Sequence record: LR745206.1
Reading direction: 5' to 3' (one strand)
Length of the DNA stretch: 64,000 nucleotides
Shown here in pieces: positions 11,981 through 55,647 of the stretch. The position numbers and the translations under genes were made by a program. Under the pieces are notes generated by a model. That model made no database searches. It was not told the origin of the DNA and worked only from the letters and a program-made list of their open reading frames with translations. Positions within the stretch are counted from its first letter, which is position 1. Each line of letters begins with the position of its first letter.

Positions 11981-14900
11981 TTATCTAACTGCTGTATTTA
12001 TAGCCGGTGCTGTTTTCTTAACAATGACTTTGTTTCTATTTAAATTAAATTTAATAGTAAATATAAATGGTCTATTTTCTGCTTCATTTTCTAAGAAAAA
12101 TCTAACCTTTTTGATATGTTTAACAGTTTGATTTTGTCTGTTTAGATTTATATATTGATAATTTAAACCATCTTGATTATTATCCAATGCGTTCATTTTA
12201 AAGTAAATACTAAGTGGTATAATAGTTGAATTTCTATCACCAGCGCTTATAACCTTAACCTTGTCGCTATTTGTTTCTACAACAGATTCTAAATCTTTTA
12301 CAACTGGATGAATACTTGATAATAATTTTGTTGTTGATGCTACTGAAACAGTTGAATCAACCCATTTTGATGGATCCAATAAAGATTTATTGTTACCAAC
12401 AAATGATAGTATTGTAGTTTCATTATATCCAATATTATATTCTGTTGAGCTCAATATAGATGTAATTGAGTTGTTTGAATTTGGACCAAATGAATTTCCT
12501 ATGTTTTCAGAAACTTTAGCAACTGATGTATCATTTATGGAATCATAATTAACCATCCAAACAAATTGATTGTTTAATTGTGTTCTTGTTAATCCTGATA
12601 TATCTGATGTTAATAACTCATCTTGATCATTAACCCAGAATGTTTGAGGAGCTCCTGTATTATAAACATCATTATTTTGTAAATATGTTCTATTTGATAA
12701 AAGTCCAAGTGGTGATTCAGATGCTTTGTTCTTAATTTTTATAACAAAATCTTTAATAACATATATATCATTAGCATAAACTCTACCAGTTGGTATACCT
12801 TGACCACTAAATGAATTTAAATAATCTTCACACTCAACATTAAATACAGTCTCAGCTCCATTATTTATAACAAATTCTTGATTATTTCTAAGTATAATAA
12901 CTTCAAGTTCACCTTTAGCTCTTTTGATTTTTTCTTCAAGACCTCTTATTCTGTCTTCAAGACCTCTCATATATTCAAATAAATCAAGTGATACACCATT
13001 CTCATCTTTGAATCCAGATAATATCTTCGTTGAATCATGGTGATATGTTTTAGCATTAACAGTTACCGTATCTGATAAATGCTCATCCAAACCTTTAGCT
13101 GATAACTCATTATCCATACTCACCTTTAAATCTTCCTTAGTAGCTTCTTGTAGAATGAAATCATTTTCATTCAATACATTATTCAAATCATCAGGAAACT
13201 CAACAGTCATTATTTCAGACCAATCAGATTCAACTGGTGATTCTGGCCAACCAACTTCTGAGATTGATTTTATTCTCATCTCAACTCTTTCACCAGTTTG
13301 TATTGAAATATCAATTTGATTGATATTTGGTGTGTCAGCACTCTCTAAATCCTCTATTTGCCAATAGTATTCACCTGTTTGTGGATCAAATATTCTTTTT
13401 CTAGCATCTGTTTTGAATTCATTCCAATTTGAAAAACTAGCTTCTTTTTTAACACTTGTATTTAGAGCATCAAGTTTGAATGTCTCAATTGGGGTTTCTT
13501 TACCATCCTTACTCACATATCTATATTGGATACGGAATTGCACAATCTCTTGTGGTTTTGTACCTCTTGTAACAACAGCTTCTGGCATATCCCAAAATCC
13601 TCTTACTCTAAATTTAGGATCAACTTTTGTCTTTGGACTTCTTGATAAATCAATAATCTCTTTTGTGACAGAAGCTAATAATTTAGACTTACTAGTTTTC
13701 TTCTTTGTTAAATCATCAACTTCTAATTGTGATTGCTTCTTAGAAGATTCTGATTTAAATTTAGTAACCTTTAATTTCTTATTTCTATCTAAGATAGCAT
13801 CTTGTATTTGTTGAACTTCCGACTTTAAAGAAACTTGATAGTTATGCTTTTGTTTTATTAAATTGGAATCTGGTGTATCAGTTAAATGTTTATTAACTTG
13901 TACAACTTTGAAATTATCTAATATAAGTGTAGGTGATATCGGTGTACCAGCTAGTTTATTTGGTGTTTTTTTAGCAACTAAATCTTGTAAAACTTCACCA
14001 TAATCATAAACATAATCAATATAGAATTGTTCCATCGATAAACCATTAGATGGTGAATCAGAATCAAGTCTTAAATCATTTGTGTAAAATCCAGTACCTA
14101 AACTCCACTTTTTAGCAACCAAGTGATTTTCTGTATTTATTGGTTTTAAGAATATAATGTTTCTCTCATTATAACCAATACTAACTCTTACTTTTTTAGT
14201 GTATATAACTGGTGAGTATATTTTTAATGCACCAATAGCCACAGGTATTGGTTCTAGTCCTTCAATTCTTTCGAATCTAACTCTTGGATTTGATTCAACT
14301 GTTGAAACTTCTATAACTTTATATCTAGTTGATGTTTTATCACTATTTATGATAACCTCATCACCTATTGTTAGTGTTTTTACTTCTGTTGTTTCAACCA
14401 CAATATATTCTAATGTATCTAGTACATACCATAATTTTCTATTCAATCTATCCTCTTGTATTCTTAATACTGAGAATTGACCATCATATAATAAATTATT
14501 TGGTTCTAAATCAAATAATTGTTCGTCATATCTTGGATTTAATGGTTCAACTAATCCAGATGTTGTTTGGTGCCAATTTTCAAATTCAGAAAATACAATA
14601 TTAGAGTTACCTCTAAATAATGAATTAAAACTATTAAGAGCTGATTGACCTAGATTTGTTAGATTACCATCCACATCCTTTGCAAAATCAACAATATATC
14701 TTCTAGATAAACATTTCCTAACATCATTTTCTATCTTACCTGATAAATCAAGTTCGATTGATAATAATGGATCAAGTAAACTATCAAAAAACCAATTTGT
14801 GTTAGATTTAAAATTAGATATACTACCTAAACTATTAATAGCAACCGGTTCCCTATTTAAATCAACAGTTATTATTTTCTTAAATTTGTTTTGACTACTT

Positions 14901-33292: not shown

Positions 33293-33378
33293 CCGTCCGT
33301 GGGTGAATGGCTGAAACCACCAGACTTTTAATCTGACGAGAGAGATCTCCATTGTAGGTTCGAATCCTACCGGGCGGA
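33293..33378 (+). tRNA. tRNA-Lys (TTT), long variable arm
   Basis: CCAGA-CT-TTT-AA-TCTGA; extended variable region. Confidence 0.75.
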
Positions 33379-33382
33379 CAAG

Positions 33383-33465
33383 GCACCTGTCGCTTAGCGG
33401 CTATAGCAACTGGCTTTTAACCAGTCGAGTTTTCTCAATCGTGGGTTCGAGTCCCACCAGGTGCA
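33383..33465 (+). tRNA. tRNA-Lys (TTT), long variable arm
   Basis: ACTGG-CT-TTT-AA-CCAGT; variable CGAGTTTTCTCAATC. Confidence 0.8.
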
Positions 33466-33471
33466 CAAAAT

Positions 33472-33557
33472 GACTCCGTTCCCGTAGTTGGCCGAACGGT
33501 CCAGACTCTTAATCTGGCGACGAAAGTCCACCGTGGGTTCGAATCCCACCGGGGTCA
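33472..33557 (+). tRNA. tRNA-Lys (CTT), long variable arm
   Basis: CCAGA-CT-CTT-AA-TCTGG; variable GAC-GAAA-GTC hairpin. Confidence 0.8.
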
Positions 33558-33629
33558 CAAGAATAAAAGTTAAAAAATTAGGAATTGACAAAAACAAACA
33601 TTACATTTGTAATATATAAAGAAGAAATT

Positions 33630-33767: not shown

Positions 33768-33839
33768 GGTTCCATCGTTCAACGGATAGGACACTCGGCT
33801 ACGAACCGAGAAATTGGGGTTCGAATCCCTATGGAATCA
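33768..33839 (+). tRNA. tRNA-Arg (ACG)
   Basis: CTCGG-CT-ACG-AA-CCGAG. Confidence 0.9.
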
Positions 33840-33844
33840 CAAAT

Positions 33845-33931
33845 GGAAGAGTAATTAAGCTGGCGCTTGACCTAGTCTTGAAAACTAGTGGTACTGAAAG
33901 GTATGGGGATCGATACCTCACTCTTCCGCCA
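33845..33931 (+). tRNA. tRNA-Ser (TGA)
   Basis: CTAGT-CT-TGA-AA-ACTAG; long variable arm, G73, encoded CCA. Confidence 0.85.
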
Positions 33932-33935
33932 AATT

Positions 33936-34022
33936 GGAAAAATAAGAGCAGTTGGTCTAAGCTCGGCGGTTTTGAAAACCGTAGGCCCTAGTGGTGTGTG
34001 AGTTCGAGTCTCACTTTTTCCG
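33936..34022 (+). tRNA. tRNA-Ser (TGA)
   Basis: GCGGT-TT-TGA-AA-ACCGT; long variable arm, G73. Confidence 0.85.
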
Positions 34023-34031
34023 CAAAAATTT

Positions 34032-34118
34032 GGAGAGCAATCTAATCTGGTGATTAGGGCCGCCTGCTAAGCGTGTCGCACCTTCGGGTGTGGGGTTCAA
34101 TTCCTCTGTTCTCCGCCA
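34032..34118 (+). tRNA. tRNA-Ser (GCT)
   Basis: CGC-CT-GCT-AA-GCG; variable GCACC-TTCG-GGTGT; encoded CCA. Confidence 0.8.
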
Positions 34119-34121
34119 AAT

Positions 34122-34205
34122 GGAAGGCAATCTAACTTGGTAGTTAGCCACGCTTGGAAAGCGTCGGGCACCTTCGGGTGTGGGTTTCGATTACTCTGTC
34201 TTCCG
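34122..34205 (+). tRNA. tRNA-Ser (GGA)
   Basis: ACGC-TT-GGA-AA-GCGT; same variable arm as the preceding gene. Confidence 0.8.
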
Positions 34206-34210
34206 CAAAT

Positions 34211-34291
34211 GCCTCTGTATCGTCCTCGTCTTCGAAACGAGAGTAGCGTAACGGATAATGAAAAATGTAGGTTCGAATCCTACCAGGGGTA
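34211..34291 (+). tRNA. Rearranged tRNA-Arg (TCG)-like gene: no D arm before the anticodon, D-arm-like hairpin after it
   Basis: GCCTCTG/CAGGGGT acceptor, CTCGT-CT-TCG-AA-ACGAG, CGT-AACGGATA-ATG, GTAGG-TTCGAAT-CCTAC. Confidence 0.6.
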
Positions 34292-34295
34292 CAAA

Positions 34296-34598
34296 ATGAA
34301 TGAAATAATTATAGGAGATTGTCCGATTTGTGATCGTGAAATGTGGAGAGGTAGCTTTGTCGATAGGCATCACTTTTACCCTAAGTGTAAAGGTGGTAAA
34401 GAAACAGAGTATCTACATAAAGTGTGTCACCGAAAGATACATTCTGTTTTTACAGAAAATGAATTGGCAAAAGAATATAATAATGCTGAGATTGTTAAAT
34501 CTCATCCAGAAATAATTAAATTCATAAAATGGGTATCTAAGAAAGATCCTGATTTTTATGATAGTACAGTAACACATAATAGGAAAAGGAGAAGGTAA
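34296..34598 (+). CDS. HNH-family nuclease-like protein
   Basis: CPIC...DRHHFYPKCKGG...LHKVCHRKIH; start ATG 34296 (the track extension overlaps tRNAs). Confidence 0.8.
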   Translation: MNEIIIGDCPICDREMWRGSFVDRHHFYPKCKGGKETEYLHKVCHRKIHSVFTENELAKEYNNAEIVKSHPEIIKFIKWVSKKDPDFYDSTVTHNRKRRR

Positions 34599-35424: not shown

Positions 35425-36060
35425 ATGGAAATTAAAATTGATAGTACTTATAAAGGAACAAGAATCCTTTTTGCGGAAACAGCTAAGAGTAAACGTGTTT
35501 TACTAAATGATATGATTGAAATACTTGAATCTTATGGATATCAAGAAATAATGATACCAATCATACAAAAACAAGAAACTTTCGCTTCAAAGGTGGGTGA
35601 TGAAAATCAAAACATGATGTATAACTTTAAAGATAGAGGTAATCGTGATTTATGTTTATCACCAGAGTACACAGCAATTGTTCAACAATTAGCCTCTGAT
35701 AGAATGAAGTTTGATAAAGATGTTAAAATGTTCTACATAGGAGAATGTTTTAGAGGAGAAAATACACAAGCTGGAAGATGGAGACAATTCACACAATTTG
35801 GTGTTGAAGTCTTAAATCCATCTAAAGACTACTCTGATGAAATGATAGAAATTGCTACTAAACTAATTGAATTAGTTACAAAAAATTATGAATTAAACAC
35901 AGACGCAACAAGAGGTCTTGACTACTACAATGGTGGAAAGGGATTTGAAATTGCTTGTCCTGAGTTGGGAGCTGCTAAACAAATTTGTGGGGGAGGTTCT
36001 TATGAAGGAGGTATTGGTTTTGCCGTTGGTGTGGACAGATTACTATTATGCAACAGATAA
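35425..36060 (+). CDS. hisS: Miniature histidyl-tRNA synthetase (catalytic core only)
   Basis: YKGTR, LCLSPEYTA, FRGENTQAGRWRQFTQFGVE, RGLDYY, GGGSY, GFAVGVDR; ends with no anticodon-binding domain. Confidence 0.85.
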   Translation: MEIKIDSTYKGTRILFAETAKSKRVLLNDMIEILESYGYQEIMIPIIQKQETFASKVGDENQNMMYNFKDRGNRDLCLSPEYTAIVQQLASDRMKFDKDVKMFYIGECFRGENTQAGRWRQFTQFGVEVLNPSKDYSDEMIEIATKLIELVTKNYELNTDATRGLDYYNGGKGFEIACPELGAAKQICGGGSYEGGIGFAVGVDRLLLCNR

Positions 36061-36323
36061 GATATTTAAATTTTAATAAAATAGGTGATAGATTTGCATC
36101 AGTTGGTGATAATACCACTGATGTAAAAATAACATTTAAAACAGGAAATGAATTGAGTAATTTCATTAACAGCAATGAATCTATATTTAAGAATATGGAT
36201 TATAAATGTGACACCTCACTATTTAAAATAGTGAAGATTGAAAAAATAAAACACTTTTCTATAATAGCAAAGATAGAAAGAATAACTCTAAGAGAGTATA
36301 ACCTAGAAAGATTATTAACATGA
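36048..36323 (+). CDS. Hypothetical protein
   Basis: 91 aa; C-terminal REYNLERLL. Confidence 0.6.
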   Translation: MQQIRYLNFNKIGDRFASVGDNTTDVKITFKTGNELSNFINSNESIFKNMDYKCDTSLFKIVKIEKIKHFSIIAKIERITLREYNLERLLT

Positions 36324-37033
36324 AAACAAAACAAAGAATAAAAAATTTAAGAAGTATAGCTCCTGATTATCCGAGGATACCTCATTTTTCAAAAGCTATA
36401 TCAAATATGACTCACGATGATATATTAACTGAGTCGAATATACAATTCCCCTTATCTGGTTGGGTACAGGAGAAAGTTGATGGTGCTAATATGGGTATAT
36501 CCTGGACAAGTGGTCCACTTATTAGAAACAGAAATAATATTTTAAAGAAAGGATATATTGATACTGATACACCAGCTAAATTACAATTCAGGCCTGCTTG
36601 GAATTGGATACATGAACATGGACAAGATATTAGAAATATTTCTAAAGAGTTGATGTCTCCTGTGACAATTTATGGTGAGTGGATGTTAGCAAAACATTCA
36701 TTGGAATATGACAAATTAACTGATTGGTTTTTAGCTTATGATATTTATTTATCAGAAGAAAGAAGATTTTTGGCTCCTGATATTTTTGAGGAATTAATGT
36801 CTAAGACTAATATCAAATATATCAAACCAAAGAAGATAATATTTAATAATTTAGATGAGGTTGTTAGATATTCTGAGAAAAATTCAGATTTTAGAAATGG
36901 TAAACAAGAGGGTATCGTTATTAAAATATCTGATGGTAGTTCAGTAACAGATTCTTATAAAGTAGTTAATAAACACTTTATAAGAAGAGAAGATTTTAAT
37001 AAGGAATTAATAAAAAATAAGATTAAGAAATAA
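36320..37033 (+). CDS. ATP-dependent RNA ligase family protein
   Basis: Motif I QEKVDGAN, YGEW, AYDI, EGIVIK. Confidence 0.8.
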   Translation: MKTKQRIKNLRSIAPDYPRIPHFSKAISNMTHDDILTESNIQFPLSGWVQEKVDGANMGISWTSGPLIRNRNNILKKGYIDTDTPAKLQFRPAWNWIHEHGQDIRNISKELMSPVTIYGEWMLAKHSLEYDKLTDWFLAYDIYLSEERRFLAPDIFEELMSKTNIKYIKPKKIIFNNLDEVVRYSEKNSDFRNGKQEGIVIKISDGSSVTDSYKVVNKHFIRREDFNKELIKNKIKK

Positions 37034-55523: not shown

Positions 55524-55647
55524 GGTGATGTAGAGCAATTGGTAGCTCATCTGCTAGTTAAATGATGGAATAATCATAATCCTGAAGCTATTATAAAATA
55601 GGCGACACGGTTGGTTCTTGGTGTAGGTTCGAGTCCTATCATCACTA
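55524..55647 (+). ncRNA. tRNA-like RNA with a large insertion replacing the anticodon arm
   Basis: Acceptor GGTGATG/CATCACT, D arm GAGC-AATTGGTA-GCTC, T arm GTAGG-TTCGAGT-CCTAT; about 70 nt insert with small hairpins. Confidence 0.6.

Follow-up and report, generated by a model that had tools for sequence, protein, structure and literature searches.

The tRNA array and the gene at its end

The window analyzed, a stretch of 64,000 nucleotides, comprises bases 310001-374000 of LR745206.1, the record of an uncultured, metagenome-assembled phage of 634,780 bp with about 30% G+C. A plus-strand array of tRNA genes in this window ends with an arginine tRNA gene of unusual plan, whose parts are listed in Table 1. 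The preliminary description of this gene, namely an intact acceptor stem and T arm, only about 7 nt between the acceptor 5' strand and the anticodon stem, and a D-loop sequence placed after the anticodon arm, was confirmed in every detail.

Table 1. Features of the permuted tRNA-Arg(UCG) gene and its neighborhood (window coordinates, all on the + strand)
Position	Feature	Observation
33768-34207	Upstream part of the tRNA array: canonical tRNA-Arg(ACG) (33768-33840) and four tRNA-Ser genes	Genes a few nt apart; the permuted gene follows the last Ser gene after a few nt
34211-34217	Acceptor stem, 5' strand (positions 1-7)	Pairs 7/7 with 34284-34290, including G1.U72 and U4.G69 wobbles; all 7 pairs covary in the family
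34218-34219	U8 A9	UA in 169/170 sequences
34220-34224	D-stem 3' strand equivalent (U22 C23 G24 U25) plus C26, directly 5' of the anticodon stem	C23 (34221) pairs with G12 (34248), G24 (34222) with C11 (34247); U25 (34223) wobbles with G10 (34246)
34225-34241	Anticodon arm: stem 34225-34229/34237-34241, loop CUUCGAA, anticodon UCG at 34232-34234	Stem covaries
34242-34245	Linker after the anticodon stem (equivalents of 44 and 45 plus two extra nt)	Distance from the anticodon stem to the UAAYGG motif is 6-8 nt in 118 of 120 members
34246-34249	D-stem 5' strand equivalent (G10 C11 G12 U13)	Partner of 34221-34223; U13 faces U22, as in the canonical Arg(UCG) of LR756502.1
34250-34263	D-loop equivalent: A14 A15 C16 G18 G19 A20 (34255) followed by 8 nt	U-A-A-Y-G-G-A invariant in the alignment of 44 IMG/VR sequences
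34264-34266	A A U before the T stem (equivalents of 46-48)	Last base covaries with base 15; the base before it is A in 168/170
34267-34283	T arm: 5-bp stem, loop UUCGAAU	Stem covaries
34284-34291	Acceptor stem, 3' strand, and discriminator A (34291)	CCA is not encoded (CAA follows)
34296-34598	Small ORF (100 aa) starting 5 nt after the tRNA; context, not part of the tRNA	HNH-like motif (CxxC ... DRHH ... CHxxIH) by inspection only; no Pfam or PHROG hit; relatives of 77-80% identity in four IMG/VR contigs, and one next to an Arg(UCG) gene in LR756502.1

The 25 nt between the anticodon stem and the T arm (34242-34266) contain AACGGAUA, which is identical to the D loop of the canonical tRNA-Arg(ACG) upstream. 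The Rfam tRNA model (RF00005) scored the gene at 35.6 bits, above the gathering score of 29, but its alignment deleted the D arm (4 nt in place of 15) and placed a 22-nt insert in the variable region. The gene was not called by ARAGORN. Among the 63 Rfam tRNA hits in the 634,780-bp record, several of which are low-scoring and tRNA-like, only this gene has a UCG anticodon. CGA is the second most used CGN codon in the long ORFs of the window, with 23 of 15,447 codons (1.5 per 1000), while AGA dominates. A phage-encoded ArgRS that might have coevolved was sought with the catalytic domain PF00750 in five phage records and none was found, so a host enzyme would have to charge the tRNA. An RNA ligase gene lies 2 kb downstream of the tRNA.

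Contigs from three other studies cover the gene with 0-5 substitutions and no indel. A sediment-metagenome contig spans 33900-34688 at about 95% identity and has a single substitution in the 81-nt tRNA gene (34246 G>T, which breaks the pair 25:10), against 42 changes over 789 nt, and a soil contig covers 34173-34327 with 2 changes. A contig from an oligo-dT RNA-Seq library covers 34177-34292 with 5 changes and runs on into a related ORF; it is at best a hint of transcription, as it could represent DNA carry-over or a precursor.

Distribution of the permuted plan

The sister phage LR756502.1 (642 kb) has the same array, Arg(ACG) followed by four Ser genes, which ends in a perfectly canonical 73-nt tRNA-Arg(UCG) in front of a homolog of the small ORF. 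A search of IMG/VR with that ORF gave four contigs, one of which, designated L004, has a second copy of the rearranged tRNA in the same position. This copy is 77 nt long and carries a compensatory C-G to U-A change in the anticodon stem.

A scan of IMG/VR for the window's own exact motif gave no hit. With a relaxed pattern fixing only the anticodon loop, UAAYGG, and the T loop, and constraining neither the connector nor the bases before the D motif, 49 stretches were found in IMG/VR, at least 120 in JGI metagenomes, and 7 among one genome from each of 185,579 prokaryote species. Of these 7, three are chance matches and four are short MAG contigs of 2-9 kb, so that no clear cellular copy was found in the genomes scanned. 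In total, 134 distinct sequences were obtained, of which 120 have sound acceptor, anticodon, and T stems. The plan is therefore common and essentially phage-borne. Uniqueness to this genome, which had been named beforehand as a point against the arm-shuffled reading, was thus ruled out. A scan for canonical spacing returned at least 120 Arg(UCG) stretches, against the 49 permuted ones.

A covariance model built from 44 IMG/VR sequences (alignment A2) was run over five whole phage records, where permuted genes scored 46-87 bits and canonical tRNAs 35 bits or less. The same plan was found for Arg(UCU), Arg(ACG), Ile(GAU), and Ile(UAU). A structural scan of all loci collected (1.37 Mb), which required the two long-range pairs described below, yielded 170 distinct permuted tRNAs and added Arg(GCG), Arg(CCU), and CAU anticodons. 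The window's own phage has a second permuted gene, Arg(UCU), at record positions 388064-388143 beside a canonical Arg(UCU).

Cultured phages carry the plan too, mostly unannotated or misannotated in GenBank. Streptomyces phage Mildred21 has permuted Arg(UCG), annotated as tRNA-Phe(gaa), Arg(UCU), annotated as tRNA-OTHER, Arg(ACG), and Ile(GAU). No annotation is present at Arg(UCG) of Streptomyces phage TunaTartare, at Arg(ACG) of Xanthomonas phage Xoo-sp13, or at Arg(UCU) of Microbacterium phage Cece, which has G15 and C48 and fills the UCU slot between the annotated Arg(ccg) and Arg(cct) in an array of Arg tRNAs. A "hypothetical protein" CDS lies over Arg(ACG) of Rhodococcus phage NiceHouse and over Arg(UCU) of Maribacter phage Panino. 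Similar stretches were detected by BLAST alone in Streptomyces phages Braelyn, Persimmon, WhereRU, Navo, and Daubenski, in Microbacterium phage Big4, and in two Stenotrophomonas phages.

Pairing and covariation across the anticodon arm

In alignment A2, the acceptor, anticodon, and T helices covary, and so do two further pairs, in which connector bases at alignment columns 12-13 pair with the two bases immediately 5' of UAAYGG. Both pairs are Watson-Crick in 44/44 sequences, with three or four pair types each. Overall, 97.1% of cells pair against 66% in shuffles, and the covariation score is 0.869 against 0.245, reached by 0 of 500 shuffles, while slid registers score 0.08-0.19. In the 120 sequences, collected without any constraint on these bases, 23:12 is Watson-Crick in 120/120 and 24:11 in 119/120, whereas shifted registers give 11-28 of 120. 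Only these two long-range pairs are universal; the third, 25:10, is paired in 61/120, against a shuffle mean of 42 and maximum of 56. Twelve different dinucleotide combinations fill the helix in the 170 sequences of the structural scan. The covariance model aligned 150 matches, 137 of them distinct, in which the long-range helix is 99.6% paired and both U8 and its proposed partner A14 are invariant (137/137).

The Levitt pair 15:48 was not part of any search pattern or model. In the 170 sequences, base 15 and the base before the T stem read A-U 155, G-C 11, and other 4 (Fisher p = 6e-16), and in the 137 sequences aligned by the model A-U 123, G-C 10, and other 4. G18G19 is essentially invariant. 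The base after it is A in exactly the 154 of 170 members with Arg anticodons and U or C in the 16 with Ile/CAU anticodons, all of which have discriminator A. A20 is the classic ArgRS identity element, and the gene in the window combines it with C35 and G36, the bacterial tRNA-Arg identity set being A20, C35, and G36 or U36. U33 is invariant, purine 37 was required by the scan, and CCA is encoded after the discriminator in 62 of the 170 sequences.

The preliminary description had proposed an intact D hairpin (CGU-AACGGAUA-AUG) moved 3' of the anticodon arm in a tRNA that might still fold into an L shape. This interpretation was partly supported. The idea of an arm-shuffled tRNA able to make an L shape agrees with the conserved architecture and the sequence signatures of the tertiary core, but the specific hairpin is not supported, as it can form in only 51 of 120 members, against about 63 in shuffled controls. 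RNAalifold predicted only the three ordinary helices, that is, neither the hairpin nor the 2-bp long-range helix. Nearest-neighbor energies cannot separate the models and do not favor the long-range one, with -17.9 kcal/mol for the proposed structure, -18.3 for the three-helix structure, -18.3 for the hairpin, and -19.0 for the MFE. A D stem of UCGU (34220-34223) with AUGA (34258-34261), as in the MFE fold, was also considered and rejected, because it is not kept in L004 and the rest of the family.

Predicted permuted core, alternative readings, and related tRNAs

The gene is best read, with good though not full confidence, as a tRNA-Arg(UCG) predicted to work in elongation, with an ordinary acceptor stem, anticodon arm, and T arm and a core of permuted strand order: 8,9, 22-26, anticodon arm, 44,45, 10-13, D loop, 46-48, T arm. 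The 7-nt connector has exactly the length of U8, A9, 22-25, and 26. In this view, bases 10-21, i.e., the 5' strand of the D stem and the D loop, have moved from in front of 22 to behind 45, the 3' strand stayed in the 5' connector, and all other neighbors along the chain are unchanged. The chain would leave the acceptor stem through U8 and A9, enter the D stem at its top as the 22-25 strand, and continue without a break into the anticodon stem, then return up the other side and, after a short linker, continue as the 10-13 strand, form the D loop, whose G18G19 would meet the T loop, and pass through A47 U48 into the T stem. The D-stem strands pair across the anticodon arm, with 3 bp here and 2-4 bp in the family, which would extend the anticodon helix as the D stem does in a normal tRNA.

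Only three backbone joins would differ from a canonical tRNA: 9 to 22, 45 (plus about 2 nt) to 10, and 21 to 46. In yeast tRNA-Phe, these pairs of residues sit in the same or adjacent layers of the core (base triples 9-[12-23], 45-[10-25], 46-[13-22], and 21-[8-14]), and the presumed closure of the joins rests on this geometry. The analysis itself demonstrates the pairing with its covariation, the covariation of 15:48, the conservation of U8, A14, and G18G19, the link between Arg anticodons and A20, and the wide spread of the plan in phages. The L-shaped fold, expression, processing together with the neighboring tRNAs, charging by the host ArgRS through A20, C35, and G36, and reading of the rare CGA (and CGG) codons are inferred from sequence, and there is no direct evidence of a mature, CCA-ended, aminoacylated RNA. 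The acceptor and T branch, read by RNase P, the CCA enzyme, and EF-Tu, is untouched, and the anticodon loop and A20, read by ArgRS, are in place.

Of the other readings, a structured tRNA-like RNA that is made but not used in translation, such as a decoy for a host tRNA-targeting defense or for an enzyme, or a processing or regulatory element of the array, is unlikely but survives best. Phage tRNAs are reported to counter tRNA-directed defenses (PMC11555353), and the nearby RNA ligase gene would fit, as would the purely inferred status of charging. However, A20 tracks the Arg anticodons exactly, the Ile-type members have discriminator A, the anticodon loops are standard, and the family supplies isoacceptors otherwise missing from arrays; a decoy would not need all of this at once. 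Slightly less likely is a D-armless tRNA with a separate variable-region hairpin, i.e., the moved D arm, and an unpaired 5' connector. In the window's own copy, this 3-bp hairpin can form at no energy cost relative to the three-helix structure, and its loop is identical to a genuine D loop. Most members, however, have only 5-8 nt after G19, too few for the hairpin, and the connector bases left free in this model covary perfectly with the bases before the motif. A decaying pseudogene, made by local rearrangement in an array rich in homing-endonuclease-like genes, is very doubtful. The normal Arg(UCG) at the same place in the related phage, the low-scoring tRNA-like hits in this genome, the two G.U acceptor pairs, and the rejection by ARAGORN would fit it, but it is contradicted by the compensatory changes in all four helices and the core signatures kept in more than 130 distinct sequences, by the encoded CCA, by the lower divergence of the gene than of its flanks between strains, and by its being the only UCG decoder of the genome. 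An assembly or sequencing artifact, conceivable for a metagenome-derived genome, is refuted by the independent contigs without indels and by the separately sequenced cultured phages.

Canonical tRNA-Arg(UCG) genes, for example LR756502.1 at L001:3130-3202 and L007:1557-1630 (locus designations), share with this gene the 7/5 acceptor and T branch, the anticodon arm, the T loop UUCGAAU, the D-loop sequence AAYGGAUA with A20, and A15/U48, and, in the L001 copy, the U13.U22 mismatch and the position in the array next to the same small ORF. They differ in that bases 10-21 precede the anticodon arm; the permuted gene also has about two extra nt after position 45 and no separate variable loop running along the D stem. 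The D-arm-lacking mitochondrial tRNAs, i.e., mammalian tRNA-Ser(AGY) and nematode tRNAs, likewise have no local D hairpin and a short connector, which is 7-8 nt in the phage genes, and in the extended anticodon-stem model reportedly proposed by de Bruijn and Klug in 1983, connector bases pair with bases 3' of the anticodon stem, lengthening that helix. Reviews on this topic are PMC7609411 and PMC4394434. The phage tRNAs nevertheless keep A14, R15, G18G19, A20, a standard T loop (UUCRANU), and the 15:48 pair, have a 3' connector of 17-25 nt instead of about 4-6, are 73-81 nt long and not shortened, and occur in phages of bacteria beside canonical tRNAs.

In the circularly permuted tRNA genes of Cyanidioschyzon merolae and some other algae and archaea (PMC3978253), the segment order also departs from the cloverleaf, but the 3' half precedes the 5' half and processing through a circular intermediate restores a canonical mature tRNA. 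Here, the acceptor strands lie at the ends of the gene and the permutation is internal, so the mature RNA itself must carry it, and no machinery to undo it is known in bacteria. The (8/4) and (9/3) tRNAs and allo-tRNAs of bacteria and phages (Mukai et al., PMC5389517) are natural structural variants found in phage tRNA clusters, and the window appears to hold (8/4) tRNA-Ser genes right beside the permuted gene. Those variants shift pairs between the acceptor and T stems and keep the arm order, whereas the stems here are 7 and 5 bp, and that paper mentions no permuted D arm and no tRNA-Arg. Class II tRNAs also have a long stretch between the anticodon and T stems, but with a normal D arm and a variable-region hairpin of their own, while here the stretch carries the D-stem strand and the D loop and no conserved hairpin. 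The review of noncanonical tRNAs (PMC7609411) has no phage or permuted case, and no description of this architecture was found in the open-access literature and bioRxiv, to which the search was limited, so that a prior report cannot be excluded.

Outside organelles, essentially every tRNA described so far has the same arm order; the exceptions shorten or lose arms, as in mitochondria, shift pairs between stems, or permute the gene but restore the cloverleaf in the RNA. The class found here is full-size and seems to keep the tertiary core while threading the chain through it in a different order, and, judged from anticodons, it is used for two amino acids by phages of at least three bacterial phyla. 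It offers a natural experiment on how much of tRNA recognition by synthetases, RNase P, EF-Tu, the ribosome, and modification enzymes depends on shape rather than connectivity, which its presence in cultured phages makes directly testable, and it shows that standard finders miss or misname such genes in phage genomes.

Its origin may be neutral, by duplication of segment 10-45 followed by loss of the outer copies, with later anticodon shifts among Arg and Ile. An adaptive origin, by escape from a factor that reads the normal D arm or variable loop, is also possible. In its strongest form, a speculation we consider unlikely on present evidence, the permuted core would be a second, phage-borne tRNA architecture for whole sets of Arg and Ile decoders that stays compatible with host ArgRS and IleRS, RNase P, EF-Tu, and the ribosome while escaping a host factor, or a phage's own factor, that reads or cuts the normal D arm or variable loop, such as a tRNA-directed defense nuclease or a modification enzyme; if so, it would also be a ready-made natural scaffold for engineering tRNAs with altered recognition. 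The frequent position of the genes beside HNH or endonuclease VII genes, like the RNA ligase gene near the one studied here, is a lead and not evidence. The short repeat GUAUCGU/GUAGCGU (34217 and 34243) was first taken as a trace of a recent duplication, but it is explained by the pairing model and is not evidence of one.

Other tRNA genes and variants

Coordinates of the features described here are collected in the table. Three tRNA-Ser genes of the window were missed by ARAGORN and match Rfam's tRNA-Sec model. By our reading, the first of them has an 8-bp acceptor stem, a 4-bp T stem, and an encoded CCA, which is the (8/4) tRNA-Ser type reported for phages by Mukai et al. (PMC5389517). Among the long-variable-arm tRNAs with Lys (UUU and CUU), Asn (GUU), and Gln (UUG) anticodons, which measure 82-87 nt, the Lys ones are conserved between the two huge phages. 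ARAGORN also calls Leu tRNAs of only 74-76 nt in L003, a locus of LR745206.1 outside the window. Variable arms seem to be gained and lost freely in this phage.

The second permuted tRNA of the same phage, Arg(UCU), scored 67 bits against the family model and lies directly upstream of a canonical 73-nt Arg(UCU). The 124-nt hit to the tRNA model, with 40.9 bits, has normal acceptor, D and T arms but 62 nt in place of the 17-nt anticodon arm, and may represent an intron-like insert or a broken gene. In locus L003, ARAGORN also reported tRNAs with a 4-nt (gtag) and a 2-nt (gt) anticodon, that is, with 8- and 6-membered anticodon loops. In loci L005 and L006, a tRNA-Arg(UCG) has a normal D arm, but its acceptor strands do not pair, and only positions 8-63 were aligned by Rfam; a 120-aa ORF follows before the HNH-like gene. 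The stretch in locus L014 is a chance match to the search pattern and, by our reading, is a canonical tRNA with anticodon UUA, which would read the stop codon UAA.

Features noted in the window and in other sequences
Sequence	Coordinates	Feature
Window	33845-33927, 34031-34115, 34122-34204	tRNA-Ser (UGA, GCU, GGA)
Window; L001 (locus of the related huge phage LR756502.1); L003	Window 33293-33379, 33383-33466, 33472-33558; L001 670-939; L003 14398-14484 and 33961-34042	tRNAs with Lys, Asn, and Gln anticodons and a long variable arm
LR745206.1	388064-388143 (L003 14064-14143, outside the window)	Second permuted tRNA, Arg(UCU)
Window	55524-55647	124-nt hit to the tRNA model with 62 nt in place of the anticodon arm
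Window	35425-36060 and 36320-37033	211-aa ORF (PF13393) and 237-aa ORF (PF09414)
Window; L001; L004 (IMG/VR contig with a permuted copy)	Window 34296-34598; L001 3236-3535; L004 1948-2244	100-aa ORF with an HNH-like motif by our reading
NC_042008.1; MT521992.1; PP540027.1; ON637770.1	NC_042008.1 91367-91442 and 86379-86453; MT521992.1 100906-101046; PP540027.1 27999-28106; ON637770.1 gene 174	GenBank annotations at permuted tRNAs
L005 and L006	2522-2592	tRNA-Arg(UCG) with unpaired acceptor strands
L014	about 14140-14251	Chance match to the search pattern
L003	33364-33437 and 45836-45923	tRNAs with 4-nt and 2-nt anticodons

Neighboring protein genes and database annotation

Just downstream of the tRNA array, the 211-aa ORF matches only the class II core of histidyl-tRNA synthetase, and the 237-aa ORF is an RNA ligase. 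Microbacterium phage Cece also has an RNA ligase gene next to its array. The 100-aa ORF, which starts 5 nt after the tRNA and carries a CxxC ... DRHH ... CHxxIH motif, accompanies Arg(UCG) genes, canonical or permuted, in related phages and showed no Pfam or PHROG match.

GenBank annotations at permuted tRNAs are wrong or missing. Mildred21 has "tRNA-Phe(gaa)" and "tRNA-OTHER," and "hypothetical protein" CDSs lie over the tRNA in NiceHouse and Panino, as well as over a stretch in Big4 identified by a BLAST match only, while several other phages have no feature at all.

Stem pairs across the permuted family

In the family-wide alignments A2 and A3, the first acceptor pair is G.U in about a third of the permuted tRNAs (48 of 137 distinct), including the window's copy. 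Pair 27:43 at the top of the anticodon stem is unpaired in 50 of 137.
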